From Selaginella moellendorffii (taxonomy: Eukaryota > Plantae > Lycopodiophyta): a DNA stretch of 64,000 nt. Position numbers and translations under genes: made by a program. The notes beneath the pieces were generated by a model, which worked only from the letters and a program-made list of their open reading frames with translations, was not told where the DNA came from and did not search any database. The stretch lies in NCBI RefSeq assembly GCF_000143415.4, contig NW_003314306.1, positions 996,815 to 1,060,814 on the forward strand, given 5' to 3'. How positions within the stretch are numbered: position 1 is the first letter of the stretch; each line of letters begins with the position of its first letter. Below, piece after piece: positions 16,774 through 62,094 of this stretch.

Positions 16774-16776
<3 letters not shown>

Positions 16777-17122: not shown

Positions 17123-17425
17123 AACTAGTTTGTTGCATATTATATGCAACAACACTTGATTTTCTTAATAATAGTGTAATTCTTGTTTAGTATTATTTAA
17201 TAATATAATTGATCAATCAAAACTTTATAATTTAAAAATATAAGATTAATTTTATTGCACACCATTATATGGTAGAATAAAATAGAATATACTAGAAAGT
17301 GTTTAGAAAAAATTATAATTTATAAACATATTTATAAATTATAAATATAATATTAATTTAAATGACAAACAACTATTAAATAGTAGAATCTCCCAGAATA
17401 TATAAATATATTTTTGATGTATCTA
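17123..17425 (-). mobile_element. Decayed copy of the Helentron/HINE-like element at 39091-39420
   Basis: Collinear similarity (aattgatcaa...aagattaat.ttattgca...tagaataaaa.agaatatactagaaag...gtagaat.tcc.agaatat). Terminal hairpin gttgcatattatatgcaac. Confidence 0.6.
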
Positions 17426-17584
17426 TCAGCTCCCTCTCCTCGATAGAAAAATTTTGGATGTTAAGGGCTTTCTATTGAGTAAAGTTTCCTTGCATTTTTT
17501 CTTGCTAAACACCCAGCACCCATAGCTTATTATGAAGGTGGAGAAGGTTGGAAATGGTTCCTCCATGCTAGATGTGGCATTGGT

Positions 17585-18173
17585 ATGTCCTCTTCTTGGC
17601 AAGAAAGAATAAGAATTCTCACTCAAGCTAAAAGTTTATTCTATATTTGTGGCTATTGTAGGAGTGTTGGCATTGCTTTCATTAGCTTCGAGTTTACAAA
17701 TCTTTTTTCTGCCATCTTTATCAAGTGCAATATATGTCATCCAAGTGAAAAAGAGAGACTAAGGCATTTCTTTTTTCTCATATCTATCCCAGAGCAAGTT
17801 ACTAAGGCACTCAAGGAGCACAAAACAATGTTTGTGAGACTGGATGTATATATTAACTATGTAGGCATTGCTGAGCAAAGGGACTTCCTTAGCAATGCAA
17901 AATGGTGCAAGGCCTTGAGCGTGAACCTATCAAATGCACAATCCAAAAAATAAGTCTCAATTCTCACAATTTCCTCATTCCACATTCTTCAAGAGAGCAC
18001 ATTCTAGCCATAAGAATCTGATGCGGGAGAGGAAGAACATTGTGTTAAACTTAATGCTTTATGACTTTATGAGAGAAATGACAAGCTGTTTGGAAGCAAT
18101 TGAGGAGGATTGGGTGTCATATTTACACTTATTTCTCTGCTATGATCTAGATGAAGTGATGGGGAAGTTCTAG
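17585..18173 (+). mobile_element. Possible hAT transposase C-terminal (dimerisation domain) relic
   Basis: Broken frames give KWC...VSILTI / PHSTFFKRAHSSHKNL...R, loosely matching the hAT WW...ILSIPASS...ERxFS pattern. Weak. Confidence 0.3.
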
Positions 18174-18806: not shown

Positions 18807-20289
18807 ATGCCAGAGGACGATGCATATCGATTCGAGGTTACGGGGCCAAAGCGCAAGCATTTCAACTGGTAAAGAATCTCGCCGCCCTAGCTGCATTGCT
18901 CTGTTTGAAGCGATTCTTGGCGGGCTGGGTGTGTGATTTTGGCAGTAGAATCCCGTTTCGATTGATTCCAATCGCCCCCGACAGAATTCTCAGCTACCCT
19001 AGGCTTGTCTTTGGATCATAGCCTTTCATTTGTCCCATTTTGGTGTCTCTTTCGTTCACTTGCGTGCTAAGGGCTGATTGATAAGTAGCTAGAGTTATTT
19101 CGATGGCTAGTCTTTAGTGGATTGGTCCTCACTTCTCCATTCTTTTTTTTTTGTTGTTTCGCAAAGCTTGCTTGGGCTTGAGTTCATTGTCTACTTTTTT
19201 GTTTCATTGCTGCTAAAGACTTGGTCCGGCTAGAGTTCTCGTCCTTTAAAAGCTTTTTATCTCGATTCCTCGCGAGTTCTTACCATACATTCTTTCCAGG
19301 GATGTTCCGGACGACAAAAGAGCAATCTTGGCATGCCTTGTGTCAAGCGTGTACTCACTCCAGCACGACAGATCGAAAAACTACACAGGAACTCCGCAAG
19401 CTCTCGCTCCTCCCTGGTGGACGTCCTTCAACTACGAGCTCCTCGACGTGATCCTCGGCAATGACAAGCTCCGGATCAACGGCGCAGTGTTCGTGTGGAA
19501 CTACAAAAACCACTGGAAGCCTGCCAGAGCTCCGATGGTGGTCCTGGCGCTCAGAGGCACGGACAGCCTAACCAGCGACCTCATCGTCGACTTCAAGATC
19601 GCCAACCAGGAGCTTTACAAGACGCTCTCCGAAACGCCGTCGCATGGCATGGCAAGGACAACGTTTGCATCACGGGGCACTCGCTCGGAGCAGCGGTGGC
19701 GCTCTCCGCCGCTCGGATGATGGCATCGCAGGGCCAGTTCGTCGAGGCTCATCTCTTCAATCCTCCATTCTCGTCCTCGACCGCTCCATACAAGTCACTC
19801 TTCGGTGCTGAGACTTACAGCAATCTCCAAGAGGTTTACACCGTTGCAAAGGCCGGGCTCGTCAACTTACTGGTGGATGCCGCAAAGAGAAGGGAGTCCG
19901 AGGCAGAGTTTGCGGCACTTGGAAGCTGGTACCCGGACATGTATGTTCATCCCAGTGATCCGGTATGCTCGGGCTTTCTCGAGCACTTCAAGAACTATCA
20001 GTATATGCTACAGGGGAAGTACGCGAGATTGGCGATGCCTCACGAATCCATCCGGGGCGTGCTCTGCTCCTCCAAAGCGAAGCCGCATCACCTCCTCCCC
20101 TCGGCAAGGCTTCACGTCCCAGCGGATGAAGGCAAAGCTGCGAGTGCTCGAGACGCTCATTCTCTTACACAGTGGTGGTCGGATGGAGCAGTCGTTCAGG
20201 TGCAATTTGTCAACTTGACAGGTCAAGAACACTTGGATCATCCGCTGCAAATCCCGTTTGGGGGGATAAGCTACGAAGCTATGGTGTAG
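18807..20289 (+). pseudogene. Class-3 lipase (At4g10955-like), copy 2: two exons, frameshifted
   Basis: Exon 1 18807-18868 (MPEDDAYRFEVTGPKRKHFN-W), intron 18869-19299, exon 2 from 19300. A 25-bp deletion at ~19623 shifts the frame upstream of GHSLG. Confidence 0.85.
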
Positions 20290-20779
20290 TACGCGGCTAT
20301 GACTTCATGGTACATATTTTCTCTGTGCTCAAAGAACCCACCCGAGAAAAAAGTTTTTATTTTTCCTGTGCTAGACCAAGGTTTGAAGAGAACGCGGCGT
20401 GTTTTCGACGTTCAATCTGACTGGAAGAACGTCACAGGTGGATGTTTACCACGTCATGACTTTACAATGAACACTTTCATTGTCTGCTCGAGCCAAAGCC
20501 TTCAAAGTACGTTTGCTCGCGTTTGTTTTTGTTAGATGGTTAAAGAGAGAAAAATGCCGGATAATGAGGGTTGGCGGTTTCAACAAGAGAAGCACAAGCC
20601 CAGTGAGGACAGATAGTGGGAATAACTTCAGAAAGAAGAAGCTGAGCTTCCCGAAAATGAGATTTTTTCGTCACTCTTTAGGTTATGAGAAGGGTTTACT
20701 CGTGGTAATCTTGTCAGTTCCTTTTGGGGCTCATCCTTTTGCAGTACTATAAGGTACTCTTCTAGGGATTGCCCTTGTG

Positions 20780-22005
20780 ATGAAGAAACAAGCGCCTGTG
20801 TTGCTGCAAGACGACACTTTGGAGACGGTTCTCAGCTATGTGGACCTGGCCACACTAGCGACCTCATGCTCCGCCGTTTGCAAGTCATGGAACGCCATCA
20901 TCGGCGATCCATCCTTTCGCCGCCGCTGGTGCCAAAACAGTGGCCACAAGGAATCCTTGCGGCTTATGACTAGCTCCTTCGACTACGGCGAGCGTTGCCA
21001 CGCCTGGGATCCATCACGGCCCCAACGCAGCGTGGAGTTTCCGTTGCCCCACAAAACGGAAGAATTTCCTAACGCTCAAGTGGTTGCTTCCGCGGGTGGC
21101 CTGGTATGCGTCTTCAGGACGCACAGGGGCATGGTTGATCCTGCTGATGATGTGTTTCACCTGGTGGTGGGGAATCCAGTGACCCAAGAGTGGAGCGAAC
21201 TACCACCGCTCCATTGGGAGGACAGAGAAAGATGCACTTTAGCGGGAGTGATCGACTTTGCCATGTTCGTCGACAAGAATGGCTTCAAAGTCGGTCTGCA
21301 CTACACCGCTGTCGACTTCTCAGGCCACTGGTGCTGCATCTACGACTCGGCAACGCGCTCCTGGTCTTCTCTCCCCAAGCTCCCGTTCTCGCCAGCCTAC
21401 GTCAAAATGAAGGCGCAGCGGCTTTCAGATTACAGCGTGGACATGGCACCCCCTGCTGTATTCCCAGGCTTGGACGATTACTTCTACGATCTCACCATCC
21501 TGGGATTTTACGACTTTGGCCGCGCCAGGTGGAGCACCGGCGCAGCCTGAGGATTACAACAGGCCTGGAAGACAAGGTTGACCCGGATGGAGAGATCCTG
21601 CGCTGCGTTTTGCCGTTCCCGGGACTGTGCACCGCGAGGCTGTGGGAGTACAATGGCCAGCGATACCTGGCAAGTGGCTGGGTGTATGCGGGAGGCTACC
21701 GCGAGTCAGGGGTGTCCGGAGTTGATGGCTATGGCGTGTGGAAGGTTGACGACAAGGGTGGCTTGGTTGCCGTCTCTGCAAAGACCCATAAATCGATCCT
21801 TCGTCAAGTGTACGCTGGGCAGCGCTCTATGGGAGCGGTTTTCCGTTGTTCTGTTCATGCAGAGGCCAATCTGGTGATCTTTTCAGAGACAGGGCTCATG
21901 TTTGTTTACGACTTGAGCACAGGGGATTGGGGCGGAGTAGGGGGGCACGTAGATGAATATTCAAAAGCAGTGATTTTTCGCCCGTCCCTCAGGGCACCTA
22001 GATGA
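20780..22005 (+). pseudogene. F-box protein copy 2, frameshifted
   Basis: Near-identical to 10025-11260 but lacks 10 bp (ggaagtcgtg) at ~21540, giving a stop at 21550. The remainder continues in another frame. Confidence 0.88.
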
Positions 22006-22053
22006 TCCAGAAAGGAGGATGAACGCCACACAAACAGGTATTGTTAATCCTGA

Positions 22054-22831
22054 NNNNNNNNNNNNNNNNNNNNNNNNNNNNNNNNNNNNNNNNNNNNNNN
22101 NNNNNNNNNNNNNNNNNNNNNNNNNNNNNNNNNNNNNNNNNNNNNNNNNNNNNNNNNNNNNNNNNNNNNNNNNNNNNNNNNNNNNNNNNNNNNNNNNNNN
22201 NNNNNNNNNNNNNNNNNNNNNNNNNNNNNNNNNNNNNNNNNNNNNNNNNNNNNNNNNNNNNNNNNNNNNNNNNNNNNNNNNNNNNNNNNNNNNNNNNNNN
22301 NNNNNNNNNNNNNNNNNNNNNNNNNNNNNNNNNNNNNNNNNNNNNNNNNNNNNNNNNNNNNNNNNNNNNNNNNNNNNNNNNNNNNNNNNNNNNNNNNNNN
22401 NNNNNNNNNNNNNNNNNNNNNNNNNNNNNNNNNNNNNNNNNNNNNNNNNNNNNNNNNNNNNNNNNNNNNNNNNNNNNNNNNNNNNNNNNNNNNNNNNNNN
22501 NNNNNNNNNNNNNNNNNNNNNNNNNNNNNNNNNNNNNNNNNNNNNNNNNNNNNNNNNNNNNNNNNNNNNNNNNNNNNNNNNNNNNNNNNNNNNNNNNNNN
22601 NNNNNNNNNNNNNNNNNNNNNNNNNNNNNNNNNNNNNNNNNNNNNNNNNNNNNNNNNNNNNNNNNNNNNNNNNNNNNNNNNNNNNNNNNNNNNNNNNNNN
22701 NNNNNNNNNNNNNNNNNNNNNNNNNNNNNNNNNNNNNNNNNNNNNNNNNNNNNNNNNNNNNNNNNNNNNNNNNNNNNNNNNNNNNNNNNNNNNNNNNNNN
22801 NNNNNNNNNNNNNNNNNNNNNNNNNNNNNNN
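22054..22831. other. Assembly gap (other gaps: 16236-16434, 24865-25453, 27414-27513)
   Basis: Runs of N. Confidence 1.
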
Positions 22832-23879
22832 GCGCATACGGATCAGATGTCCGAGCAAACAAGAAGCGGAGCACCTCTCGATGCACCGGATCAGGTTCCT
22901 GGAAAGATGAGTTAAATGAAAGAGAAAGAGCAAAGCAAGAAAAGCGAAAGTGAACCTTACAAGCAACAAGTTGTAGAGACGAGTGAGCAAGTCAGCTCCC
23001 TTCAGGAAAGCCTTGAGTTTCTCCAGCATTTCATCGCCGGTGGTGGTAAATGCTGTTTTCTCTTCCTCGTCATGGCCACCTATGGAACAAATCCTCTTGA
23101 GAGCCTGTAGCTGCACCCTCAGCTCCTCGGTGTGGATAGTCCTCACGGCCGAAGCAAACGCCTGATTCAGGAGCCACGGACGAGCGTCGCCAGCCTTCCT
23201 CCTGTGAAAGCCGAGGAAGAAGTCTGCAAACCGATCGAGCTGGTGCCTGTGCCATCCCCCTCGAGCAAAACACGAGTAGCTTGGCCAAAGCACTGGCGCT
23301 GGATGAGAGCCGCCAGTGAGTGAGCAGTGTTATCGACGGCAAAAGCCCTGGAAGTTCCTGGAGATCCTTGACGAGCTTTGCCTCCTAAGATCACATTTTC
23401 TTCGCAAATTAACTAGATACTAAACGATTGAAGGAGCCTACACTGGAACCTATGTACTTACTGCCTCCGCACCGAAGATCTCACACTGCTGGGAGAAGCG
23501 TGGCGAGTTTTGCGTCCGTTGAGCGACAAAAGAAGAGACCAACGAACCTTCTCTTCTGGAAGAATAAAGCTCCCTCCATTCGTGGGACACAACACAGTTT
23601 CTGTTTTCGTTTTCTTCCCACTACAAACGAAAAATAAGTAAAAAGACCAACAAAAACCTTACTTGCTTAACAGTACCTGAGTGAGCTCCACATGGAACCA
23701 AGAGCGCTGTGAAACTCAGCATGGCCAATCCAGGCCACTTCCAATGTTTTGAAGTAATAACTACCTTTGAGGCTCTTGGTGCTGGTGAAGGCTACCTTTG
23801 TCCGCACTGTTGCTCACAAGGAACATGAGTTCACAGCCAGAGGATTCAAGTTACCAAAAAAAGTAAAAGGTTTAAAGTA

Positions 23880-26800
23880 AAAATTTCATTTAATCCGATT
23901 GAATAAAAAATAAATAATATATACAATGTTTATGCTCTATGGCTACAAAGAAGAAAAGAAGGTCAGTGTATGAGAAAAATACATTTCAATCAATACCTTT
24001 TTACTTTCCTTGATAATGGTCTTTATGCTTTATACTTGCCAAAGAGAAAACAGAATTAGTGCATGAAAAAAATGTATTTCAATCAATACATTTGAGGTGG
24101 TTGCCAAAATGACGGTGGTGAGCCGTGTGGAGGTGGTAGAGATGGTGGCGAAGATGGTGGCAGCCGAGGTGATAAGTGGTGTGAAGGTGGTAGAGATGGA
24201 AATGGCAGCAACTTTGGCACCAATAATGGTGACAAACATGGTAGTAATGTCAATTTTGATGGAGGGGATGGTGGTGGAGGTGGTGGTGAAGATGGTGGGA
24301 GCAATGGTGGTGGAGATGATGGGAGTGGTAATGGTGGAGGTGGGATGGGAGGTGGTGGTGATGTTGAGAGGGGAGTTTTGATCCTAAATAAAAAATAAAT
24401 AATAAGATATAAAAAATACAATCCAAAAAACATACCATTATTTCCTCAAATTTCTTCTATTTATTGATGTTGTCTTTGTATGTTTTGAATTTTTGTTGGT
24501 AACCAAGGGCCATGAAAAATAATTAACCTTCTTGCATAGCAAGAGTTCCCACCCAATACTCTCCCACGTCTAAATTTCACTACACATAGTTGTATAGTGT
24601 GAACGCCAATTTGGCTACTTTTATACTCGTTATGTGGCATAACCAAACCACCTAAAAAGAACTATAAAATGAAAAAATCCATTCTAAAACAACATTTTGC
24701 AAAGCAATCTCCACTTTAACATCCAATGCAACACTAGCAACTTATGTTGAAAGAAATTCTAAACAGTCGGAATTGTTGTTGAAAAATGAAGGTCCTCATA
24801 AATCCCATTTTAAAAATCTAATAAATCCCCCTTGGCTCTAAAAGGACCAATTTATGGTGGTGTGNNNNNNNNNNNNNNNNNNNNNNNNNNNNNNNNNNNN
24901 NNNNNNNNNNNNNNNNNNNNNNNNNNNNNNNNNNNNNNNNNNNNNNNNNNNNNNNNNNNNNNNNNNNNNNNNNNNNNNNNNNNNNNNNNNNNNNNNNNNN
25001 NNNNNNNNNNNNNNNNNNNNNNNNNNNNNNNNNNNNNNNNNNNNNNNNNNNNNNNNNNNNNNNNNNNNNNNNNNNNNNNNNNNNNNNNNNNNNNNNNNNN
25101 NNNNNNNNNNNNNNNNNNNNNNNNNNNNNNNNNNNNNNNNNNNNNNNNNNNNNNNNNNNNNNNNNNNNNNNNNNNNNNNNNNNNNNNNNNNNNNNNNNNN
25201 NNNNNNNNNNNNNNNNNNNNNNNNNNNNNNNNNNNNNNNNNNNNNNNNNNNNNNNNNNNNNNNNNNNNNNNNNNNNNNNNNNNNNNNNNNNNNNNNNNNN
25301 NNNNNNNNNNNNNNNNNNNNNNNNNNNNNNNNNNNNNNNNNNNNNNNNNNNNNNNNNNNNNNNNNNNNNNNNNNNNNNNNNNNNNNNNNNNNNNNNNNNN
25401 NNNNNNNNNNNNNNNNNNNNNNNNNNNNNNNNNNNNNNNNNNNNNNNNNNNNNCAATCGACTGCTATTTTTTTAATAAGCAAGGGCCATGAAAAAAAGTT
25501 GACTCCCTGCATAGCAAGAGTTCCCACCTAATGCTCTCCTATATGTCCAGATTTCACTACACATAATTGTATAGTGTGAACACCAACTTAGCCACTTCTA
25601 TACTCGTGATGTGGCACAACCAAACAGTAAAAATTGTAAAAATTCCACAGTAATTCCATATTAATTCCATAGTATTCCACAAAATTCCATAGAAAAAATT
25701 CCATCTGATCCGATTGAATAAAAAATATGTGGTATATACAGCATTTATGCTCTATAGCTTCAAAGAAGAAGAGAAGGTCAGTTTATGAGAAGAATGCATC
25801 TCAGTCAATACCTTTCTACTTTCCTTGGTAGTGGTCTTTACACTCTATGCTTGCCAAAGTGAAAACAAGGCTAGTGCATGAAAAGAATGTATCTCAATTA
25901 ATACATTAGAGATGGTTGCCGAAGTGACGGTGGTGAGCCGTGTGGAGGTGGTAGGGATGGTAGTGGAGATGGTGGCAGCCAAGGTGATGAGTGGTGTGGA
26001 GGTGGCAAAGATGGAGATAGCAGTGACTTTGGCGGCAATGGTGGTGACAGGCATTGTGGTAGTGTTGATTTTGATGGAGGGGATGGTGGTGGAGGTGGTG
26101 GTGGAGATGGTGAAAGCAATGGTGGTGAAGATGATGGGAGCGGCAGTGGAGATGATGGGAGTGGTAGTGGTGGAGGTGGGATGGGAGGTGGTGGTGATGC
26201 TGGGAGGGGAGTCTCCATCCTAAATAAGAAAAACAAATAGTAAGATATAAAAATTACAATCCAGAAAACATACCACTACTTTAAATTTCTTTCATTCATT
26301 GATATCGTCTTTGTATATTTCGAATTTTTGTTGGTAGCCAAGAGCCATAAAAAACAATTAACCTCCTTCCACAGCAAGAGTTCCCACCCAATGCTCTCCC
26401 ACATATCCAAATTTCACTACATATAGTTGTATAGTGTGTTGTGATGTGGCACAACCAGACCACCTAAAAAGAATTGTAAAATAAAGAAATCCATTCTAAA
26501 ACAACCTTTTGCAAAGCAATCTCCACTCTAGCATCCAATGCAACCCTAGCAACTTATGTTGAAAGAAATTCTAAATAGTCAAAGTTGTTGAAAAATAGTT
26601 TTGAAAGAGGTCCCTTTAAATCCCATTTTCAAAAGATCTCATAAATCCTCTTTATCCCTAGAAGAACCAATTTATGGTAGCGTGCGGTGCAGTATAAGGG
26701 TGATATGGAGAGGGTTTGGCAAGGCACTTACCAAAACTTATGTAACTGGATACGATGGTGCTTGTGGTAAGCAAATATATTTCCTAGCAACTTTTTTATA

Positions 26801-44856: not shown

Positions 44857-45621
44857 CTAGAGGATGTTGCAGCCGCAGAACCACTTACGGCAGCAACTTG
44901 GTCGCGGTGATGGCGGTGATGGCGCTGGCGGAAGATTTGGAGGAGAAGAGAATGCGGGAATGGTGACGAGGAGGGTTCCCGCGGAGGAAAGACTGCTGCT
45001 GCTTGGCGTGGAATCGATCACCTTGGCTTTGCCTTTGAGAGCGCGCCGCCATTCGTCCTCGACAGTAGAAATTTCGCCAGTGTCGGAATCGCTCGCGTTC
45101 GGGGCAGCGTAAGCACTGTCGGAAGAGCTCGGATTCTCCGGAGCGCGAGAGCTCGGATTCTCCACGCTTGATATTTCGGCCCTGGAAGAGCTCGGACCGT
45201 CGCCGCGACGGCCGCGAGTGCTCGATTCGGCCTCGCCAGAGCTCGGCATCGATATTACGGCGCTGGAGCTGCTCGGATTACCTCCGCCGGGTGCTGTGGC
45301 GCTGGAGCTCGGATCCTCGCCACTGGAGCGTGGGAAGAATATTACGGAGCTTGAAGGCCCTGGATCGAGAGAACGCGGGATCGATGTGGAGGAGGAAGAG
45401 CTTGCGCCGTGGCCAGGGATCGCCGAGGAAGCGCTGGGGCCGCCGCGGATCGACGTTGGCAAGACATCGCCGAATCTTGCGGCCGATGCGATGCTGGAAG
45501 CCCTTGCGCTGGACGCGATCGACCTGGAATTGCTCGGCGCAGCCGTGGCAGCTGGATTCGCTGCGAGATCGTCGTGAAGAACCAGCTCGGACTCTCTGGG
45601 CTTGGAAGGCTTGTTCCCCAT
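44857..45621 (-). CDS. Ser/Pro-rich disordered protein with MGNK N-terminus and Cys-rich CaaX C-terminus (CNIL), 254 aa
   Basis: Single open frame with repeated (D/N/G)PSSS and KGKAKV, ending PSCCRKWFCGCNIL*. Paralogue at 61009-62094 shares upstream sequence. Confidence 0.75.
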   Translation of the reverse strand: MGNKPSKPRESELVLHDDLAANPAATAAPSNSRSIASSARASSIASAARFGDVLPTSIRGGPSASSAIPGHGASSSSSTSIPRSLDPGPSSSVIFFPRSSGEDPSSSATAPGGGNPSSSSAVISMPSSGEAESSTRGRRGDGPSSSRAEISSVENPSSRAPENPSSSDSAYAAPNASDSDTGEISTVEDEWRRALKGKAKVIDSTPSSSSLSSAGTLLVTIPAFSSPPNLPPAPSPPSPRPSCCRKWFCGCNIL

Positions 45622-49133: not shown

Positions 49134-50997
49134 ATAGCGAGTTTTCCAGTTTTGACATGTTTCTTCTTTTTCTTGGCTGCAGCAACTCGGGCTGGAGATA
49201 TTTTACTAATAATAACCTTTTACACATGTAGAAATTCACTTCACGAACACCAGTTCTCCTCCGGTGATCTACTAACACGAACGAGACGATTTCATTCTTC
49301 CTGCATCAAAAAGTTCCACCATTTTGATCAAGAGTATTTATACAACCTGATTTTTGTTTTCGTAATACACTTGATGTATCCAGGATTCGAGAGTATTTTC
49401 TCAAAAATACTATGAGCTCCTACTTTCAGCCTCGGCAAGGCCCAATCTTTCTTGTCATCTGTGGAGAATGCAGTTGTCTTCGAGTGCATGACCAAAGATA
49501 TGTGGTAAGCTTGACGCAAAACTTTCCACTATCTTCGAGTTTGATTAGAAAACTCTTTTGAAATCATTGGAAGGGGCAATCGTGACTGTCGAACATCAGT
49601 ATTACGGAGACGGTTCTCCCTTTCAAAACTTCACTTATGAGAATCTTGCTTTACTCCAACTATCAGGCATTAAGTGGATGATGATCTTACCGTGTGATTT
49701 CCGTTTTCTTATACAGAACTTGATTATTCAACGATATAACAAGCAAGGCAAGAATCCATGGATTGTTGTGGGAGGTGCCTTGAGTGCGTGGTTTAGACTG
49801 AAATTCCCGCACTTGGTTGCTGCAAGCTGGCAAGCTCAGCCGTGGTGCAAAGAATCTTGGAATACAGTGCTTATGACGAGCAAGTATGTTTACTCACGCC
49901 AAAGCTCGCTCATGTTTCTTTGTTTCTCTTGTAGATTGGAGTTTCTGCTGGTCCCGAATGCAAAAAAGAATTACAGGAGATTACAAAAGCTGGCCGAAGA
50001 AGGCCTGGTAGCAAATTCAGCAGCCGTTAAATCCATGTTCTCTGCGGAAAAGGTATTGTCTTTGGAGTTCCTTCGTGTTTACTTGCGAACACTACATTTG
50101 ACAGCTTAAAGGTGATGACTTCTTATCGCTGATAGCAGACATTGGAGCTGGTTTTGTAAGTAAACATCGTGAGAATTTATACCAAGGTTGACTAGCATTT
50201 TGTTTATGCTAGGTGCAATATGGTAGATCTGATAACCTTTGTGCTCCACTTCTGGAAGCTGTTCAGAACAAAACAGACCTTCTGGTAACTTTTCTTTCAT
50301 AAAGGTCAAATGTTTTGCTTTTTTTTAGAGGGCGTTTGCCAATCTTCTGAGCCTGCGTCGTTCTTCCGTTGAACTTTACGATGCAAATGAGCTGAAAAAG
50401 GCGAGCTGAAGCAAACGATATCGGTGCTATAAACTCTATGAGCTATGCGTACCAAGTTTGCACAGAATTGGCAGCCTTCCAACTTTCTCCGGCCAACGAC
50501 AGCATTCGGCTAAACCTTAGTAAGTTTGTTCATGTTTTACTCAGATGTTTTTCTTACAATTAACAGGTAATTCATCAACTCCTGTGCTGAATTGTTTGGC
50601 CACGAGACATTCCCAGATGTCAAAGCTTCAAACGAGAACTATGGAGGATGGGATATTGCTGGTAATTAATTCGTTCTTTCTTTTGCTGGCTTGATTCTGG
50701 TCTTAAACAAGCATGCTCTAGAAATTATCTTTCTGAATGGTATTGTTTTGCTTCGAAGACTTTAAACAAAGATGAATTCACAGAGCCTTTCTTTATATTA
50801 ACGTGTAAGAACTGCGCACATTGCCAAGACCTTTGGCCAGAATGTACCATAGAAACTGGTATAACTTCTGTAGTAATAATTTTTGTATACCCTGTTTTTA
50901 ACATTGGATTGGATTCTCAGGTCTAGATCAGTGCCAAGAGCTAACGAAGGCCCACGCATTTATATCTTTGTACATGAAGGAGTGGCTTTCCTCGTAG
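49134..50997 (+). pseudogene. Decayed S28 peptidase copy
   Basis: Start ATG mutated to ATA; IVTVEHQYYG; NPWIVVGGALSAWFRLKFPHLV with the catalytic SYAG deleted; frameshifts. Confidence 0.88.
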
Positions 50998-51659
50998 TAC
51001 CAAATGATGCTTTGGTTTCAATTAACATGATGATTAGATGAATTTTCCCGCCCCCTAGGTTTAGGGGAATGGCTCCTTCTTTCGGCTTACATCCGGTGCA
51101 TAGGTTTGTCGATTGTTTCAGATCAAACTTACCGAGCATTTGAGGCAGATTTCCGATCCAGAGGCGGCGCTTCGCACGAGCTAGTGATAAAATTATAATG
51201 CATGGATCCTATTAGTTTTGGTCTTGAGCTCGCAGGAAACAAACTAAAACTTGATAAGAGTTTTACTTTCTCTCTCTTCCAGCTTGCTCTTTTTTTTTCT
51301 TTTACAGATCGATGGCAATTACTGGTGACTTTGGAACTTCAGGACGACACTAGACTCCGAATTATTCTCAGGTAAGGTCCCTACCATTCATCATTTTTTA
51401 ACATTAGATCAACATTCTCTCACAGTGGCTAGTCAATCAAAAGAAACAAGGGTGTTGCTTGGACGGAGCTCCATTCGTCAAGTAATAGAAAAGATTCGCT
51501 GTAAAACATATGAGACAGCCGTTTGTGTTCTATTCCTAAAAGAAAACAACAAAATCTGCTGCCTCCTATGCTTCCATCATTGACATGAATAACAGTTTCG
51601 GAATTGTCAGCATCCCGGCAGCTTGCTTCAAATATCAGCAAAGCGAGGTTCGTTTGATC

Positions 51660-53695
51660 ATGGCATTTTTCCCAATGCTGACATGCGTGTTCTTTCTCCT
51701 GGCTACTGCAGCAACTACATGCTCTGCTTTGGGTTGGAGAACTTCAATCCACCAACAGCGTCTCTTTTCTGCTTCATCTTCAAACTTAAACAACACGAGC
51801 CAGTTGTTCCAGAAGCAAAGAGTTAACCATTTTGATCCAGAAGTACGACCTTGCATTTTTTATCTGGTGTTTATAGCGTTTGATTGATCCAGGATTCGAG
51901 AGTCTTCTCTCAAAGATACTTCGAGTTCCTGGATTACTTTCAGCCCCAACAAGGCCCAATATTTCTCGCCCTCTGTGGAGAATCCACATGCCGCGGCGGA
52001 TATCAAAGAACAGCTGTAGGAGTAAGCGTCTCACATCATAACGTTTCATCCTTTTATCAAATTTGATGCAAGCAGGCTCTAGCTAAGTCACTAGGAGCTG
52101 CAGTCGTGACAATTGAGCATCGGTATTACGGACAAAGCTATCCCTTCCAAAACTTCTCTTACAAGAACCTCAAGTATCTCACAACACAGCAAGCTTTATA
52201 TGATTATGCTCTCTTTATCGAATATTATCAGGTAGATAAATATCTCGAACGTGTTTTCTCGTGACCTTAACGTTCTTTAGTACAGAACTTGATTAATCTA
52301 CGATATAACAAGCAAGGCAAGAATCCATGGATTGTTGTGGGAGGTTCATACGCAGGTGCCCTGAGTGCTTGGTTTAGACTGAAATTTCCGCATTTGGTCG
52401 TTGCAAGCTGGGCAAGCTCAGGTGTGGTCGAAGCTGTGCTGGAATATAGTGCTTACGACGAACAAGTACGTAAATTTACTTTGAGATTTCCTGTATTTAT
52501 CCTTCTTTGTATGTAGATAGGAATTTCTGTTGGTCCTGAATGCAAGAAGGCATTACAGGAGATCACAAAGCTGGCTGAAGAAGGTCTAGTAACAAACGCA
52601 ACAGCAGTTAAATCTGTGTTTTTTGCACAAAAGGTATTTCATCCTTTCTAAATCGTTTCTCTCAAAGGCTTAAGACTTGCGAACTTCGCACAGCTCAGAG
52701 ATGATGATTTCCTGTCATTGGTAGCAGACATTGCCGCTGGTTTTGTGAGTAGAAAGCTTGAGACTAACATAGTTTTCATTTAACGAGCTTTATATTTTTT
52801 CCGTTTTATTTTTTGTTAGGTGCAATATGGTGCTATTGATATGCTCTGTCCTCCACTTTTGGAAGCCATTCAGAACAAAACCGATCTCCTGGTAATTTGC
52901 TCCTCTTTCATGAGTTCTATACAAGTCACGACTTCGTTGTTTTTCCAGATGGCATATGCACGTATTGGTGGAGTAGATAGCTCCTCCAGTGACTTTTACG
53001 ATGCATATAAACTGAGAAGACAAGCTGAAGCAAACGATATCAGCGCTAAAGACACTATGAGCTGGAATTACCAAATTTGCACAGAATTAGCTTACTTCCA
53101 AGTTGCCCCTACCAACGACAGCATTCGATCATCACGTATAAATCTCCAGTAAGTTTGTTTTCCCTTTTCCCTCTCAGCTTGAGTGTGACTTCATGTTGCT
53201 ACGTGTTAGATTACATCGACATTTGTGCTGTATTGTTTGGTCCCAACACATTTCCAGATGTTAGTGCGGCAAACTGGAACTATGGAGGGCGGGACATTGC
53301 TAGTAAAATATTTTCTTCTTCATGCTGACTTGCTCTGTTCTAATCTTGAATAACAGGTTCTAGAATTATCTTTCTGAATGGCTCACAGGATCCGTGGCAG
53401 CATGCGTCGAAGACGACATTTTCTCCAGGAGGTAAAATGATAGGGCAGCGCTTTTATGCTTAGCAGATTTACAATGATTTATTTTTCCCATAGAACCCTC
53501 CTTTGTATTAACTTGTGAAAGCTGTGCACACTGCGAGGACCTTTCTATGGATTGTAGTTCAGACATTGGTAATGCTTTGATACATGACCACCCTTGCGTT
53601 TAACATTGATTCTCTCAGGATCACCCAGGTGCCAGGAGCTAATGAAGGCCCACGCCTACATATCTTTGTACATGAAGGAGTGGTTTTCCTCGTAG
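51660..53695 (+). CDS. Serine carboxypeptidase family S28 (EDA2/PRCP-like), secreted, multi-exon, apparently intact
   Basis: Signal peptide; FSQRYFEFLDYF...GPIFL; IEHRYYGQS; GGSYAGALSAWFRLKFPHLV (nucleophile Ser); YQICTELAYFQ; NGSQDPW (Asp); CAHCEDL (His). Canonical short introns. Confidence 0.9.
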
Positions 53696-53837: not shown

Positions 53838-54272
53838 TTAGTCGTCGTCGTCATAATGAATTTCGACAGGCAGATCCACCGGCAGCAAGACGCTCTTGCT
53901 TCGCTGCTTTGTGGAGTTCCCCTCGCTCTCGCCTTGTCCTCGGATCTCCAAGAAGAACGCCATTGTAGCGTGACGGCTCCCCTGGCGTCTCCACACAACT
54001 TGACGACGCCCAAGTTTCCGGATGGAGTCCTGGTGAAAGTATGTATTTGATCTCCAACGAGTGTCCAGTTTTAAGTTAGAAGAGGAAATGTATGATTCGC
54101 AAGGAGTTATTTTACCGGTTTGAGAAACTCGTTGAGTCGAACGTTCTCAGATGCTTGTCCGTGACCAACTTCTTGAGGAAACACTCCTTGTTCATGAGCT
54201 GGAGACGTTCCTCCTGTTCTTCCTGCTCGGATCCTAAAGAACATCCACACTCTGCAAGTTACCTTGCTCCAT
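53838..54272 (-). pseudogene. Degenerate copy of the PARP-fold gene at 56780-57544
   Basis: Shares MEQ start, QLMNKE.FLKK.VT.KH, KLCGD.R and the poly-Asp tail. Deletions and a frameshift at the FHGT motif. Confidence 0.8.
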
Positions 54273-54699
54273 GATCTATTTTGTAGTCATGTCCACAGAG
54301 TAGAGATCTATCAAATGAATGGAATAACGAATTTATGCTAAGGACTTTAGGCTTTGGAATTCGCGTGTTATAATCGTAGCGCGCCCATCCAAGGCGCCGA
54401 CTCGGAACTTTCAGTGGAGCGTTCAAGGCTTGGTAAGTTAACTTCTAGTCGTCGTTCTTAATTTTTAACAAACTAAACCTCGTGAAGTAGCTCGGTTTCT
54501 CAACAACAGCCAAGAGAGTCACCTCTCCATTGGTCTCTTTTTCTCTTTTACAGCTCGATGGTGAATTCTGGTGAACTTTCGAGCTGGGAAGTCAAAAGAA
54601 CGACGCTAGAGTCCGAAATTTCTCAAGTAAGGTCGTTAGCCAATCAAAAGAAACAGGAGTATAGCTTCGACGAAGCTCCTTTCATCAAGTAATGTGAAA

Positions 54700-56620
54700 A
54701 ATTCTCTATGAAACATTGTTCTTCCTCCTGGCTACTGCAGCAGCTACTTGCTATGCTTTGGGTTGGAGAAGTTCAATCCACCGGCAACATTTCTCTTCCG
54801 CTGCATGTACAAACGCAAACCATATTAGTTATTTTTTCCAGAGTCAACCATTTTGATCCAGAAGTACGTCCTGCATGTCTTATCTAGTGTTATTGATCTA
54901 GGATCCGAGAGTGTTCTCTCAAAGATACTTCGAGCTCCTGGATTACTTTCAGCCCGATATTTCTCGCCCTCTAGCCATTTTCAAGCTTTTGTCGCATCTC
55001 TCCTTATACCATTTAGCATCCTTTTTAATCGATTGTTATGCAAACAGCGGCAATCGTTTGAGCATCGTGGGGAGAGCTATCCCTTTCAAAACTTCACTTG
55101 CGAGAACCTCAAGTATCTCACAACACAGCAGGCTTTGTTTGATTATGCTCTCTTTATCAAGTAGATAAATATCTAGAGCGTGTTTTCCCGTGATTTTAGC
55201 ACAGAACTTGACGATAAAGCAAGCAAGGCAAGAATCCAGGGAGCTTCATACGCAGGTGCCTTGACTGCGTAGTTTGGACTTAAATTTCCGGACTTGGTCG
55301 TTGCAAGCTGGGCAAGCTCAGGTGTTATCAAAGCTGTACTGGAATATAGTGCTTACGATGAACAAGTATGTAAAATCACACTGAAGTTTTATCTTGTTGC
55401 CCGCTAGGCACTCTGCTAGTGTATGATGTTCACCACCCAACCGTATAAGCATTAGAGCCTCTCCCAAGACTTTAGATGCTGTGGATCTCTAAAGATATTT
55501 ATGATTATTTTTTCAAGTAGGTGGGAATTTCTGTTGGTCCTGAATGCAAGAAAAAGCATTACAGGAGATCACACGGATGGCCGAAGAAGGTAGCAACAAA
55601 TGTAATAACAGTTAAATCTCTGTTTCTTAAAATAAAAAAGGTATCGATTGCTTCTGTTCTCTCGTTTTACAGCTCAATGACGTTGACTTCCTTTCTCTTG
55701 TAGCAGACGTTGCAGCTCCTTATGTGAGAAAAGAGCTTCATTCGATCCTAGATTGTACTTAACATCTTGTCCCATATTCATTTTATTAGGTGCAATATGG
55801 TGGCATTAAGTTGCTTTGCCCAGATATTCATAACAAAAGCGATCTCCTGGTAATTTTGCTCTTCTCTCATGAGTTGTATACAATGACGACTTTATTTTTC
55901 CAGGTGGCATATCCAGGCAGATGGGGAATAGATTCCTACGATGTATATAAACTGAATAAACAGGCTGAAGTAAACGATATCACTATGGGCTGGTCCTATT
56001 AAACTTGCACAGAATTGGGATACTTCCAAATGAATGCTGGCACACACACGCACCCCTTTCTTTTCCGAGGAACCATGGCCTCCATAAGCTTTCAGGAATC
56101 GATTAAAACTTTGGTGTAAAGTATTTAGCTCCAAGGTTGTAGACGACCAGGCTTGAAAGAAGGGGAAAACAATTCGATCATCACGTATAAATTTCCAGTA
56201 AGTTTGCATTTCCTTTTCCCTCATATCTTGAGTATGCCCAGGAAGCATTATGAAGGTCCTTGCAGCGTGCACGCTTTCACAAGTTACTACGAAGAAGATT
56301 CCGTGGGAAAAAAATAAAACATTGTACTGATCTCTCGTTTTAGCCTGTGGAGAAAATGTCATCTTTGAAGCATGCTGCCACGGATATCATAAAGATAACT
56401 ATTACTCAAGAAGAACAAACTTACCAGCAATGTCCCGTCCTCCGTAGTTCCTGTTTACAGCACTAACATCTGGAAATGTCCTGGGACCAAACAAATTATT
56501 GATGACCAGCAACAAAAAGACACCACCCTTTTGATCGTCTCAGGAGCGCCAAAGTGTAAAGAGCTAATGAAGGCCCACGCGTACATAGATTTGTACATGA
56601 AAGAGCGGCTGTCCTCGTAG
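54700..56620 (+). pseudogene. Decayed S28 peptidase copy with internal inversion
   Basis: Homologous to 51660-53695 with stops, frameshifts and insertions. ~56245-56495 is in reverse orientation. Confidence 0.85.
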
Positions 56621-56779: not shown

Positions 56780-57544
56780 TTAGTTGTCGTCGTCGTCGTA
56801 GTAGTCGTCGTCATCGTCGTCATAGTGATTTTCTACAGGCAGATCGATCTCCGCCACCGGCAGCAGGACGCTCGACTTTGTGTTTGGAATGCTGCGCTGC
56901 TTTGCGGTGTTCCACTCGGTCTCTCCATGTCCTCGGAGCTCCAGGAAGAGCGCCATTGTAGCTTGACGGGCTCTCGTCTTGCAGTACTGCAGGCTCACGT
57001 ACGGATCTTTCCCGACCCAAAACTTCCTGGTGTCTCCACACAGCTTGGCATCCAATCCATTCTTCTTGATGGATTCCAAGTTTTCGGATGGAGTCCCGTG
57101 AAAGACGTACTCGAGAGACTTGAGCTCCGAAGAGTCTCCTTGCTTGACAGCGCAGAACATCTCCACTGCGACCACATGTAAGTTCTAAGTTCGAAGAATG
57201 TATGATCATTGACAACTTAACTGATGAGCTCTTTGTTTGTCTTGGCGGTTTCCTTGAGAGCTTGGACGAACTGGCGGTACATATCGGGCTTATCGGCCAG
57301 AAACGTGTTGAGTCGAACGTTTCTTATCTCTGGATGCTTTTCCGTGACCACCTTCTTGAGGAAACTCTCCTTGTTCATGAGCTGGAGGAGCTCCTCGACT
57401 GCGTGCTCGATTGCTTGATCCTCGGGATCCTGGAGAAAAAGCAGGAAACTGGAGCTTGCGAAAGAACAAAAGAGTTCCAACTTTTACTTTTCCGATGATC
57501 TTGATCTCCCGTCGATAGCCACTCCGCAAGTTAACTTGCTCCAT
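56780..57544 (-). CDS. Stand-alone PARP-fold (diphtheria-toxin-like) ADP-ribosyltransferase-domain protein, ~216 aa, 3 exons
   Basis: Exons 57544-57488, 57429-57222 and 57165-56780 splice in frame via GT-AG introns. Motifs YVFHGTPSENLESIKKNGL, VSLQYC and LLPVAEIDL; acidic tail. Confidence 0.75.
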
Positions 57545-58031
57545 GCGCTCCAGATCGATCTGGTAGTCAAGTCCATTGGGATACTTCGCAGAGGTGATCC
57601 TTCCCAGAGAAACATTCGATGCTCGTCCCTTGGAGATCTATCAAATCAAACAACAAAACTGGAAAGCTATTGCTAGAACGCAATGACATAGCAGACCTTG
57701 TTCTTGTGACCGTCACGAATGGCATGCTCGGTGCTTGCGCTGTATCGCACCCAGCAATCGTCCTCCCTCCAGTAAACTCCAGCCTCAGTGGGATCGGCGC
57801 ACTCCTTGGTGATACACATTCTTGGATAGAAACGATCACAAGCGCAGCCACATTATATTGCGAGAGAATGACTATAATTAATGCTACTTGTCTCCACGCT
57901 CCAGGGATTTTGGATAGATTTTACCCGCATTTTTAGATCAAAGAGTTTAGCTTGAAAAAAGTAAAGGAGATTTCCTTTATGAGTATACAAAATAGGGTTT
58001 ATCAAGTCGCCGAGAAGGCGGGAGGAGAGCG

Positions 58032-60407
58032 ATGAGGATCGCCGTGGTCAACTCTGATCGTTGCAAGCCCAAGAAGTACCATCAGGAGTGCAAGAAGAGC
58101 TGCCCAGTGGTGAAAACAGGCAAATTTTGTTCTCATCTCTTGAAAGGTATGCGATCTGAGATTCGAATTTCCAGGGAAGCTTTGCATCGAGGTCTCTCCG
58201 GCATCCAAGATCTCGTCCATTTCGGAGGAGCTCTGCATTGGATGTGGGATTTGCGTGAAGGTCGGCCACTTCGATTCCCCCTTCCCGTCTTGTTTCGATC
58301 AGTGGTTTGTGTGGCAGAAATGTCCATTTGGAGCGATAGATATCATCAAGCTTCCTAAGGAGTTGGACAAAGAAACCACGCATCGGTATGGAGCGAACAC
58401 TTTCAAGCTACACAGGTTTGCTTGGTTTTCTAGATGCGTAGTACTAGTGTTCTCGTAAACAGGCTGCCTGTTCCAAAGCCGGGCCAGGTCTTGGGTCTCG
58501 TTGGGACGAATGGAATTGGAAAGACGACCGCCTTGAAAGTTCTTCACGGGTTCCTCAAGCCCAACTTGGGGAACTTTGCGGTACTGGCTTTTGCGGTATT
58601 TGTTTTGTTCCTATGACAGTGTTACGTTGTAGGATCCACCGGACTGGCAAGAGATCTTGACATACTTCAGAGGATCGGAGCTCCAGAACTACTTCATGCG
58701 ATATCTGGAAGATAATTTGAAGGTATGGGAACAGGACTTGGGTTCTTCAAGTCATTTCTTAACGAAGCCTGCTGCCTCAGGTGGCCACGAAAACGCAGAA
58801 CGTTTCCGACGTTCCGAAGGTAATTAAAGGCACCGTCGGTGAAGCTCTCTCGCGGAAGGATGAACGAGGCGTGATGGAGGATGTTTGCCATGATCTTGAT
58901 TTGATCGATGTTTTGGACCGAAATCTGGATGATTTGTCTGGTGGAGAGCTCCAACGCTTTGCTATAGCCGAGGTGGCCGTGCAAAAAGCAGACGTCTACA
59001 TGTTTGATGAGCCATCCAGCTTTCTGGATGTTCGGCAGAGGCTCAAGGCTGCTCAAGTCATTCGGTCCCTTCTCACACCAAACAGGTACATGTTTTTTTC
59101 CTTCTTGGTTTCCCTCGTTCCCCTCGACTTACTCTGAGGTTGCAATGCAGCTATGTGATTGTCGTGGAGCATGATCTGAGTGTTCTCGACTATCTATCCG
59201 ACTATGTTTGCTGCCTCTATGGAAATCCCGGTGCGTATGGTGTTGTGACGCTCCCTTTCTCTGTGAGGGAAGGCATAAACATATTCCTCGCTGGATACAT
59301 TCATACGGAAAACGTGCGGTTCCGTGAAGTGTCCCTCACATTCAAGGTAAGAATTGTTTTCACTAACTTGCAATTAAAACAGGGATTATGTCAATGCAAG
59401 GTTGCCGAGAGCGCTCAAGAGAGCCCCGAGGAAGTCCGGACGTACACTCGGTATAAGTATCCTGCCATGTCGAGGACTCAAGGAAGCTTCAAGCTTCAAG
59501 TCAAGGAGGGGAACTTTACAGACTCGCAGATCATTGTGATGCTCGGCGAGAATGGCACTGGAAAGACCACTTTCATAAGAATGCTGGTAAGTTTCCAGAA
59601 CTATTTTCTCGTGACATGCAAAGCTTTTCTATAATCTCAGGCTGGGCTGCTAAAATCCGACGACGACGCTCGTGACTCGGAAGAAATTCCCGAGTTCAAC
59701 GTCTCATACAAGCCACAACACATCAACTCCAAGTCCCAGTCCACGGTCCGGCATTTGCTGCACACCAAGATCCGAGACTCGTGCTTTCATCCTCAATTCA
59801 ACACGGACGTGATGAAGCCTCTCCAGATTGAGGCACTCATGGACCGGGAAGTTGCCAACTTATCGGGTGGCGAGCGCCAGCGCGTTGCTATTTGCCTTTG
59901 CCTTGGAAAGGTAGTAGCGCTTTTCCTTGAACTTATCCTCGCAGCATATCAAACCATTTGCCTTGGCAGCCCGCGGACATCTATCTGATCGACGAGCCCA
60001 GCGCTCACTTGGACTCCGAGCAGCGACTCGTGGCGTGCAAGGTGATCAAGCGCTTCATCCTCCACGCCAAGAAGACGGCCTTCGTGGTGGAGCACGACTT
60101 GATCATGGCAACGTACTTGGCGGACAGGGTCATCGTCTACGAAGAAAAACCGTCGGTGGAGTGCGTTGCCAACTCGCCCCAGAGTCTCCTCACGGGGATG
60201 AACCTGTTCCTCTCGGTGAGTAGCGTTTTCTCTCTCCTTCTCCAGGCGTTCATGGCTGATTTGATTCCACTCTTTCGCTTTGCGCAGCACCTGGACATCA
60301 CCTTCCGGCGTGATCCCACGAACTTTAGGCCGCGGATCAACAAGCTCGACTCCACCAAAGATCGCGAGCAAAAGGCTGCCGGATCTTACTATTACTTGGA
60401 CGACTGA
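58032..60407 (+). CDS. ABCE: ABCE family ATPase (RNase L inhibitor / Rli1-like ribosome recycling factor), divergent
   Basis: Fe-S domain ([14 protein letters not shown]...[13 protein letters not shown]), two NBDs ([22 protein letters not shown]; [23 protein letters not shown]), C-terminal [17 protein letters not shown]...YYYLDD. Multi-exon, frames appear open. Confidence 0.93.
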
Positions 60408-61008: not shown

Positions 61009-62094
61009 CTAGAGGATGCTACAGCCGCTGTGGCAGCAGCGGGAGCACCTACAGCACTTCTGATACCAGCGCTGATGGGGGTGTGGCGGTGGCAACGCGG
61101 GTGGCGCTCCTGGAGAGCTTGGAGGAGGAGAGAAAGAACTGCCAATGTTGCCAATGACAGTAGCAACTGACCCGGTGGATGATTTGCCGCTGCTGATGGA
61201 CTCGCTTTCCTCGATCAGTATCCCCTTGCCTTTATCGTCGGCGCTCGCGATCGGGGTCGGGCCAGCGCGTGATAGACGCGACGGACCATGGAGCAATCCA
61301 CCCGGGCCGGTGATCTCCGAGACTGGGACCTTCGGAATCGAGACTGAGGCGATCGATGAGCTCGGACCTGGAAGACCAGAGCTTGCGGCAATCGGATCCT
61401 TGCCTGGAGACGCGCTGGATGAGCTTGGATCCTTTAAAATCGCGGTCGATGAGCTCGGACCTGGTGCTGTGGCAAGGGACGAGCTCGGATCCATGCCTGG
61501 AGACGACATTATGGCGCTGGATGAGCTCGGATTCTCTGAAATCGCGGTTGCGGCGCTCGATGAGCTCGGACCTGGAAGACCAAAGCTTGCCGTGACACTG
61601 GACGAGCTCGGATCCGATATTATGGCGCTGGATGAGCTTGGATCCTCCGCGATCGCGCTGGATGAGCCCGGATCCCCTGAAATCCAAGGCGTGGCACTGG
61701 ACGAGCCCGGATCTCCGCCCTGAGTTGATATTACGGCGCCGGAGCTGCTCGGATCCTTCCCGCGATAGCGAACTGCGTCGCTGGAAGTGCTCCTGGGATC
61801 AGACCTGCGGAACGTTGGAACCTCGGCTATGGCGGAATCTCTGGGACTCGAAGCAATCAACCTAGAATCGCTGTTAGACCTGGTAAATGCGGCATGCGGA
61901 GTAGCGGGACTAGGCGGAGGAGCGACAGGACCGAGAACGGGAGATGGAAAGAGCCTGGCGATCATCTGGAGATCCTCATTGCGCACTGGCACCACCGGCT
62001 CAGGCGGCGCCGCTGGCTCGCCATTGTCTCCCTCGCTATCGTTGCCCTCTTCTTGCCGTTGCTGCCGGCCAGGATCGGGAGGTGGAGGACCCAT
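61009..62094 (-). CDS. Ser/Pro-rich repeat protein with Cys-rich CaaX end (CSIL), 361 aa; paralogue of 44857-45621
   Basis: Single open frame with about 13 (D/G/N)P(S/G)SSS repeats and DKGKGI, ending WYQKCCRCSRCCHSGCSIL*. Confidence 0.75.
   Translation of the reverse strand: MGPPPPDPGRQQRQEEGNDSEGDNGEPAAPPEPVVPVRNEDLQMIARLFPSPVLGPVAPPPSPATPHAAFTRSNSDSRLIASSPRDSAIAEVPTFRRSDPRSTSSDAVRYRGKDPSSSGAVISTQGGDPGSSSATPWISGDPGSSSAIAEDPSSSSAIISDPSSSSVTASFGLPGPSSSSAATAISENPSSSSAIMSSPGMDPSSSLATAPGPSSSTAILKDPSSSSASPGKDPIAASSGLPGPSSSIASVSIPKVPVSEITGPGGLLHGPSRLSRAGPTPIASADDKGKGILIEESESISSGKSSTGSVATVIGNIGSSFSPPPSSPGAPPALPPPHPHQRWYQKCCRCSRCCHSGCSIL

Follow-up and report, generated by a model that had tools for sequence, protein, structure and literature searches.

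A divergent WWE and short PARP-type gene in the lycophyte Selaginella moellendorffii

Introduction

Does a lycophyte carry PARP-type proteins beyond those that surveys credit to land plants, and if so, of which kind? This question is raised by a locus in a stretch of 64,000 nucleotides from Selaginella moellendorffii (assembly GCF_000143415.4, contig NW_003314306.1, positions 996,815 to 1,060,814 of the forward strand), here called the window, whose own numbering is used throughout. An earlier interpretation, made from the letters of the window alone and referred to here as the sequence-only reading, had described at 56,780 to 57,544 a minimal ADP-ribosyltransferase (ART)-like gene of the PARP fold, outside all known plant architectures. 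Our analysis extends this locus to a four-exon gene on the minus strand (57819-56780) in which a WWE domain stands in front of a shortened PARP-type domain. Judged from its sequence, this intact-looking gene belongs to a WWE + short-PARP family, as a local copy that is unannotated and very divergent; its PARP part is related to short PARPs of algae, including those of the streptophyte alga Klebsormidium. Our preferred reading, to which we assign a probability of roughly 0.6, is that of an intact WWE + short-PARP gene whose product would most likely serve as a non-catalytic or weakly active module binding nicotinamide adenine dinucleotide (NAD) or ADP-ribose.

In the eukaryote-wide surveys of PARP proteins, land plants are represented in clades 1, 2 and, in moss, 6 (PMC2964712, PMC4245714), and the survey of the SRO proteins treats Selaginella for PARP+RST proteins only (PMC2848248). 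Altogether, land plants are credited only with PARP1-3-type enzymes, RCD1/SRO proteins and the clade-6 PARPs of moss (PMC2964712, PMC4245714, PMC2848248). Our literature search returned no paper combining Klebsormidium, WWE and PARP, and the WWE + short-PARP family is undescribed in the literature searched. That a lycophyte has such a gene suggests that the ADP-ribosylation toolkit of early vascular plants includes another branch, as yet unannotated. If any member of the family binds or transfers ADP-ribose, plants would have more readers and writers of ADP-ribose than are now known, and structural work would gain a PARP domain minimised by nature.

Architecture of the gene

The gene consists of four exons separated by three introns of 59, 58 and 56 nucleotides, all of the GT..AG type and all keeping the frame (phases 0, 0 and 1), with six canonical splice sites. 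The coding sequence comprises 864 nucleotides, or 288 codons, and the whole exon and splice set was checked by script (Table 1). The ATG at 57819 is the first one past an in-frame stop lying 12 codons upstream, and no further coding exon was found downstream of the TAA at 56780-56782. The exons were never joined, every scan, search and fold being run exon by exon, so that whole-protein residue numbers are arithmetic only. In these numbers, as read from the sequence, the WWE domain spans about residues 14-90, and a helical linker separates it from the shortened PARP-type domain, which begins at about residue 124 and is followed by an Asp/Tyr tail. This is the WWE-PARP architecture, with the WWE N-terminal to the PARP domain and no other globular domain: exons 1 and 2 match the Pfam WWE, exon 3 aligns to the N-terminal part of the PARP domain, and the stop follows the tail.

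The WWE domain

Exon 1 matches positions 4-32 of the Pfam WWE profile (PF02825) with an E-value of 0.029, and exon 2 matches positions 41-66 of the same profile with an E-value of 1.1e-4 (22.9 bits, for a cut-off of 21.1). Since two independent pieces cover, one after the other and in order, the two halves of a single profile of 67 positions, a complete WWE domain is well evidenced. The sequence-only reading had stated that no WWE domain was evident, which is thus wrong, and with it falls the description of the protein as minimal and outside the known plant architectures: with a WWE in front, the layout is of a known WWE-PARP type, similar to that of PARP11, PARP12 and PARP13, or to that of RCD1 without its RST domain. 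The same reading had reported the absence of RST, zinc-finger and WGR domains, and none of these was matched in the Pfam scans of the exons. Exon 3 gave no credible Pfam match, but only two weak sub-threshold ones.

The closest solved sequence to exon 2 is the WWE of PARP11 (2dk6), a match that is not significant (E 1.9), with the common pattern Y..ID...M.Q.NL..G..R.IK. In the structure of the RNF146 WWE with iso-ADP-ribose, this Tyr, Gln and Arg are contacts to the ligand. As it keeps the Tyr...Gln...Arg of the ADP-ribose-binding WWEs, the domain probably anchors the protein to partners modified by ADP-ribosylation or poly-ADP-ribosylation.

The PARP-type domain

The C-terminal part of the protein is predicted to adopt the PARP-type ART fold, as had been proposed. 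The AlphaFold2 model of exon 4, built with an alignment of 39 sequences as input, has a predicted local distance difference test score (pLDDT) of 73.4 and a predicted template modelling score of 0.67, and a Foldseek search with this model against the PDB returned PARP catalytic domains or KptA for all of the best 50 matches. By VIA-align, the model is closest to PARP13 (Z 10.3, root-mean-square deviation 2.6, with 106 of 112 residues aligned), followed by PARP10 (9.6), wheat SRO1 and RCD1 (both 9.1), tankyrase (9.0), PARP1 (8.0) and KptA (8.0, with 86 residues aligned). A shape search in the ESM-Atlas gave template modelling scores of 0.74-0.77 to a haptophyte short-PARP cluster and to the WWE-carrying clusters of PARP12 and ZAP, and in the language-model atlas exon 4 falls among the PARP catalytic clusters.

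The domain begins upstream of exon 4. When the 45-70 residues ahead of FHGT in 50 relatives were made into a profile, exon 3 reached 10.1 bits with it, compared with at most 5.2 for 200 shuffles, and its segment VRLN...MYRQFVQAL was aligned to the family pattern N..PG.PLYERF..AW. As this segment is the counterpart of the canonical strand and helix found before FHGT, the PARP-type domain starts in exon 3. A MAFFT alignment placing the start of exon 4 (EMFCAVK) on the ERF helix of the family was rejected as an artefact of exon 3 having been left out.

When the family profile was run against the sequences of the PDB, the best matches were PARP12 (9.8e-9) and PARP13 (1.3e-8), then PARP15, PARP10 and PARP14, with no RCD1 or SRO chain among the best 60. 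From these profile matches and from those of the fold, the gene lies nearest, among known kinds, to the WWE-bearing clade-3 PARPs of animals (PARP12, PARP13, PARP10, PARP14 and PARP15), and not to RCD1/SRO.

Relatives in algae and the link to Klebsormidium

A phmmer search with exon 4 against 1.84 billion representative sequences returned none at E<=1e-10 and seven at E<=1e-3, five of them real relatives; P0001 and P0002 were rejected as spurious repeat proteins. The protein is considered unannotated because none of these 1.84 billion representatives is at least 50% identical to it. A word-index search with exon 4 came back blank, which says little, since only proteins of 72-229 residues were candidates. 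Among the relatives are P0004, which is GAQ83764.1 of Klebsormidium nitens (1042 residues), and KFL_001880230, and the profile searches added proteins of Emiliania huxleyi (EMIHUDRAFT_114877) and Cymbomonas (CYMTET_53063), as well as MMETSP sequences, further Klebsormidium proteins and metagenomic eukaryotes.

The signature of this short-PARP family, FHGTP-x2-N-x2-SI-x3-GL, S-x2-YC and, shortly linked to it, a terminal x-LP-x strand within about 110-130 residues after the first helix, is found in the gene. In the 39-sequence alignment, the gene keeps all six invariant columns (F21, H22, T24, N28, I32 and Y60), with an identity to its relatives of 21-34%. It also has in common with the Klebsormidium type 17-22 extra residues between the helix and FHGT, which the main algal clade is without. 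In L001, a Klebsormidium-like gene from a metagenome, the junction codon of a phase-1 GT..AG intron lies 21 residues ahead of the His; in intron 3 of the present gene, the phase is also 1 and the distance 22 residues. Both are probably the same intron, a comparison that is underlain by a weakly conserved stretch of alignment, and the shared phase-1 intron before FHGT would argue for vertical descent.

BLASTP of exons 2 and 3 against GAQ83764.1 found nothing significant, and exon 3 has a weak match to the L001 exon that is placed differently, the upstream-profile test being the better evidence. The Pfam WWE found no match in the upstream parts of the Klebsormidium proteins and L001, even at E 10.

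GAQ83764.1 contains repeated modules, in which a segment of the type W..AP.S..W...E / LTF.TMR...IRWGFS is followed by a short PARP domain. This segment is WWE-like by eye only, the Pfam profile having no match and the AlphaFold2 model of the upstream part reaching a pLDDT of 51. L001 corresponds to positions 1647-3348 of contig Ga0590114_0000242 of the JGI metagenome 3300060284, a eukaryotic contig of 232 kb on which a pentatricopeptide repeat (PPR) gene adjoins it. Its short-PARP gene is spliced, and the gene caller retained only the last exon, as a protein of 115 residues. Many of the 'stand-alone' short PARPs of 115-153 residues in metagenome protein sets are probably exon fragments of this sort.

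A broader proposal would be that lycophytes keep a clade-3-like WWE-PARP branch from the streptophyte algae, missed by all published plant PARP surveys, and that the present copy is an active His-Trp-Ser mono-transferase or NAD consumer recruited by its WWE to ADP-ribosylated targets. We regard this proposal as speculative and rather unlikely; if true, land plants would possess, apart from PARP1-3 and RCD1/SRO, an independent module to 'read and write' ADP-ribose. To the family, the copy contributes a divergent His-Trp-Ser site, a tandem relic that documents the birth and decay of copies, and the probably conserved intron.

The NAD site and the likely activity

The elements of the NAD site that are kept are His-Gly-Thr (FHGT) and Ser-x-x-Tyr (SLQYC), both aligned to invariant or near-invariant columns of the family. 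At the position of the triad Tyr the gene has a Trp, its KFWVG being aligned to the Tyr of GEYF, and at the position of the catalytic Glu it has a Ser (RSIPN), where the relatives have E, M, G, N or Y. In whole-protein numbers, the site residues are His183, Trp210, Ser218, Tyr221 and Ser252. Neither the Gly-x-Gly turn ahead of the aromatic residue nor the near-invariant Phe behind it is retained, and the strand past the third triad position is the polar, Pro-containing IPNT, for IVVI in the relatives. The motifs listed in the sequence-only reading (FHGT..N..SI...GL, SLQYC, KQRSIPN, the LLPVAEI strand and the D/Y tail) are all present in the translated coding pieces, and its account of the triad, with the His kept, a Trp at the Tyr position and no Glu at the catalytic strand, is borne out by the family alignment.

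Because of the Trp in place of the triad Tyr, the Ser in place of the Glu and the polar strand that follows, the protein would be no polymerase. In PARP1, PARP2 and the tankyrases, the catalytic Glu stands at the start of the penultimate core strand, where this protein has the Ser, and the gene also lacks WGR, regulatory and zinc-finger domains. The earlier proposal of a mono-transferase or NAD binder rather than a polymerase thus holds in its second half, a polymerase being unlikely from the His-Trp-Ser site, whereas mono-ADP-ribosyl transfer is ranked here as the second possibility after a non-catalytic or weak binder. In the mechanism that we favour, the PARP-type domain would be such a binder of NAD or ADP-ribose, a pseudo-PARP in the manner of PARP13 or RCD1.

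Several points weigh against our preferred reading as a whole. Alone, exon 4 scores 20.7 bits against the Pfam PARP profile PF00644 (E 3.3e-4), below the cut-off of 26.7 that the relatives P0003, P0004, P0005 and P0006 pass and that P0007 also falls below. The gene keeps 20 of 49 columns conserved among the relatives, for 21-26 of 52 in the Klebsormidium type and 35-49 of about 50 in the main algal clade, and in a tree of 39 domains it sits, unplaced, on a branch of 7.1 changes per site, so that no donor or sister can be named. The family does decay, as the decayed sister copy 3 kb away demonstrates. Besides, the Trp at the Tyr position recurs in the Klebsormidium type and in other relatives that otherwise keep the motifs, and may therefore be tolerated and compatible with NAD binding. 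Finally, it is from motifs that we infer the activity or inactivity of the domain.

The recurrence of this Trp is also among the arguments for the alternative that survives best, that of an active enzyme, a mono-ADP-ribosyltransferase or NADase, which would work with an unusual His-Trp-Ser site and be brought by its WWE to ADP-ribosylated targets. The gene retains His-Gly-Thr and Ser..Tyr and still has an aromatic residue in place of the Tyr, and the third position varies freely in the family, as it does in the animal mono-transferases, where the PARPs of the H-Y-I/L/Y type likewise work without a Glu. Some constraint is also suggested by the substitution ratio of about 0.5 given below. However, an active enzyme would have to do without the Gly-x-Gly turn and the Phe that follows, its buried IVVI strand would be replaced by IPNT, and the branch is very long. 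We consider this alternative possible, though clearly less probable than the binding module.

Intact gene or silent duplicate

A second alternative holds that the gene is a silent, decaying duplicate with a still open frame, that is, a young pseudogene out of use. About 3 kb away lies a decayed tandem paralogue (the relic, 53838-54330), in which several deletions have removed most of the C-terminal half of the WWE, part of the linker, the Trp and the Ser..Tyr region, and whose tail is shorter. This already wrecked sister copy, together with the extreme divergence of the sequence and its absence from the public protein sets, would agree with a gene on the same path. Nevertheless, its four exons are open with canonical splice sites, all invariant family columns are kept, and the C-terminal half of the WWE still scores above the Pfam cut-off. 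The ratio of nonsynonymous to synonymous substitution rates (dN/dS) between the gene and the relic is 0.49 over 122 codons (dS 0.40, dN 0.20; roughly z = 2.7), and not close to 1; this estimate comes from a small sample and averages two lineages. We judge a silent duplicate to be unlikely, somewhat more so than an active enzyme.

Comparison with known systems

Our preferred reading, that of an intact WWE + short-PARP gene with a binding function, finds its closest parallel in vertebrate PARP11, which consists of a WWE and a PARP domain alone, and in its clade-3 relatives PARP12, PARP13/ZAP and PARP7. As in the gene, these carry a WWE directly ahead of the PARP-type fold and have no catalytic Glu, and PARP12 and PARP13 provide its best profile and fold matches (E 9.8e-9 for PARP12, Z 10.3 for PARP13). 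However, the catalytic domain is shorter in the gene, the stretch from the strand after Ser..Tyr to the last strands being much reduced; it has the extra insertion of 17-22 residues before FHGT, a His-Trp-Ser triad instead of His-Tyr-Ile, no CCCH fingers and an acidic repeat tail. PARP11 has been placed in vertebrates only (PMC4245714), so that, also considering the triad and the shortened domain, the gene has a similar layout but is not a PARP11 orthologue.

The RCD1/SRO proteins (clade 2) are likewise plant proteins in which a PARP-like fold, its site non-canonical, comes after a WWE, and by analogy the gene may also encode a non-enzymatic scaffold. However, the gene is without the RST domain, which defines the SROs (PMC2848248, PMC4245714), and it keeps the His of the triad. 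The third parallel is that of the uncharacterised short PARPs of algae (Klebsormidium, Emiliania and Cymbomonas), whose domain is equally short and shows FHGTP..N..SI...GL, S..YC and, at its end, a ..LP.. strand. The Klebsormidium type has further features in common with the gene, namely a Trp in place of the triad Tyr, the extra residues ahead of FHGT and, probably, the intron of phase 1. On the other hand, identity is low, many members of the main clade keep the Tyr and some keep the Glu, and the Pfam WWE is recognised in the gene but not in the Klebsormidium proteins.

Two further readings are very improbable. One would make the gene a broken-off or wrongly split piece of a standard RCD1/SRO gene (WWE-PARP-RST), or else a Tpt1/KptA RNA 2'-phosphotransferase. 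The WWE-PARP order is that of RCD1, the fold matches RCD1 and SRO1, and HGT..N..SI...GL weakly resembles Tpt1. Nevertheless, no RST match was found, the acidic tail is followed by the stop at 56780-56782 and then by a convergent gene of the S28 type, and the family profile prefers the clade-3 proteins; hence the gene is not part of an SRO gene, as had been anticipated in the sequence-only reading. A WWE-PARP-RST protein is far longer than 288 residues. As for Tpt1, the NCBIfam match reaches 15.4 bits for a cut-off of 231, the sequence match in the PDB spans the HGT motif only (E 0.67), the N-terminal part is a WWE and not the N-lobe of Tpt1, the RNA-binding lobe with its Arg-His-Arg-Arg tetrad is lacking, and KptA aligns over 86 residues with a lower Z than PARP13 over 106. 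The other is the original proposal of a stand-alone ART-fold protein of about 216 residues without a WWE: the exons and motifs from 57544 downstream are real, and the two GT-AG joins (57430-57487 and 57166-57221) give exactly 216 residues from Met 57544, but this Met lies inside exon 2, the frame being open to 57637 and continued, across the intron at 57638-57696, by a further exon with its own ATG (57697-57819), so that the full model has 288 codons, its two upstream pieces match the WWE in the correct order, and the proposed N-terminus is the end of that domain.

Genomic neighbourhood

The gene and the adjoining S28-type peptidase gene (plus strand, about 54.8-56.6 kb) together form a tandem duplication of about 3 kb. 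On the other side, and divergently oriented, lies a multi-exon ABCE1/RLI gene, the start of which is 212 bp from that of the WWE-PARP gene and which has all the usual ATP-binding cassette (ABC) motifs. The role in defence or translation control that had been suggested from the locus finds no backing in its neighbours, an S28-type peptidase and an ordinary-looking ABCE1. The PADLOC scan found nothing, and NCBIfam gave only the weak Tpt1 motif match. Among the immediate neighbours and the large open reading frames, which were those scanned, no gene similar to Crinklers was found beside this copy.

Table 1. Coordinates in the window of the WWE + short-PARP gene, its decayed paralogue and the neighbouring features
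Feature	Position	Strand	Remarks
Exon 1	57697..57819	-	41 codons from the ATG at 57819; WWE, N-terminal half; next to the donor GT at 57696
Intron 1	57638..57696	-	59 nt, GT..AG, phase 0
Exon 2	57488..57637	-	50 codons; C-terminal half of the WWE; contains the internal Met 57544
Intron 2	57430..57487	-	58 nt, GT..AG, phase 0
Exon 3	57222..57429	-	69 codons + 1 nt; encodes the helical linker and the opening strand and helix of the PARP-type domain (VRLN ... MYRQFVQAL)
Intron 3	57166..57221	-	56 nt, GT..AG, phase 1; junction codon 22 residues ahead of the His
Exon 4	56783..57165	-	2 nt + 127 codons; encodes the short PARP-type domain (core) and the acidic tail
Site residues, first part (exon 4)	His 57098-57100; His-Gly-Thr 57100-57092; Trp (Tyr position) 57017-57019	-	From the family alignment
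Site residues, second part (exon 4)	Ser..Tyr 56993-56995 and 56984-56986; Ser at the Glu position 56891-56893	-	From the family alignment
Acidic D/Y tail	56783..56827	-	GAC-type triplet repeat; Tandem Repeats Finder (TRF): (GTC)12 microsatellite, + strand, 56786-56821
Stop codon TAA	56780..56782	-	Followed by an AT-rich stretch, then the 3' end of the convergent S28-type gene
Decayed tandem paralogue (relic)	53838..54330	-	tblastn of exons 3 and 4; DNA alignment; colinear with the duplicated S28-type gene
S28-type copy	54800-56620	+	Adjoins the WWE-PARP gene
S28-type copy	52300-53600	+	
S28-type copy	49558-51000	+	
S28-type copy	286-1611	-	
ABCE1/RLI gene	58032-60400	+	Multi-exon
PSSS(S)-rich ORF	44857-45621	-	254 residues
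PSSS(S)-rich ORF	61009-62094	-	361 residues
Lipase-like and F-box gene pair	8548-11260	+	
Lipase-like and F-box gene pair	19495-22005	+	

The S28-type serine carboxypeptidase copies are arrayed along the window. Within one of them, the open reading frame (ORF) at 49558-50106 matches Pfam PF05577 (S28) with an E-value of 1.4e-14, and the copy adjoining the WWE-PARP gene shows motifs of the GxSYxG and CTE.G.FQ types. Several copies look fragmentary, and the segment 56253-56494 is inverted relative to 53543-53233. In the ABCE1/RLI gene, the first iron-sulphur motif carries a Tyr where a cluster-ligand Cys would presumably be expected.

Further away lie two ORFs rich in a repeated PSSS(S) motif, neither of them with a Pfam match. 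Both start with MG, the one of 254 residues as MGNKPS, a possible start for N-myristoylation, and the one of 361 residues as MGPPPP, and both end in a Cys cluster and a CaaX-like terminus (CNIL and CSIL, respectively). The window also contains a duplicated gene pair, in which an ORF similar to class-3 lipases is followed by one with an F-box and a beta-propeller (At3g26010-like). Finally, stretches of 24-28% G+C at 4001-6000, 14001-18000 and 22001-26000 lie between gene-rich blocks of about 50% G+C.

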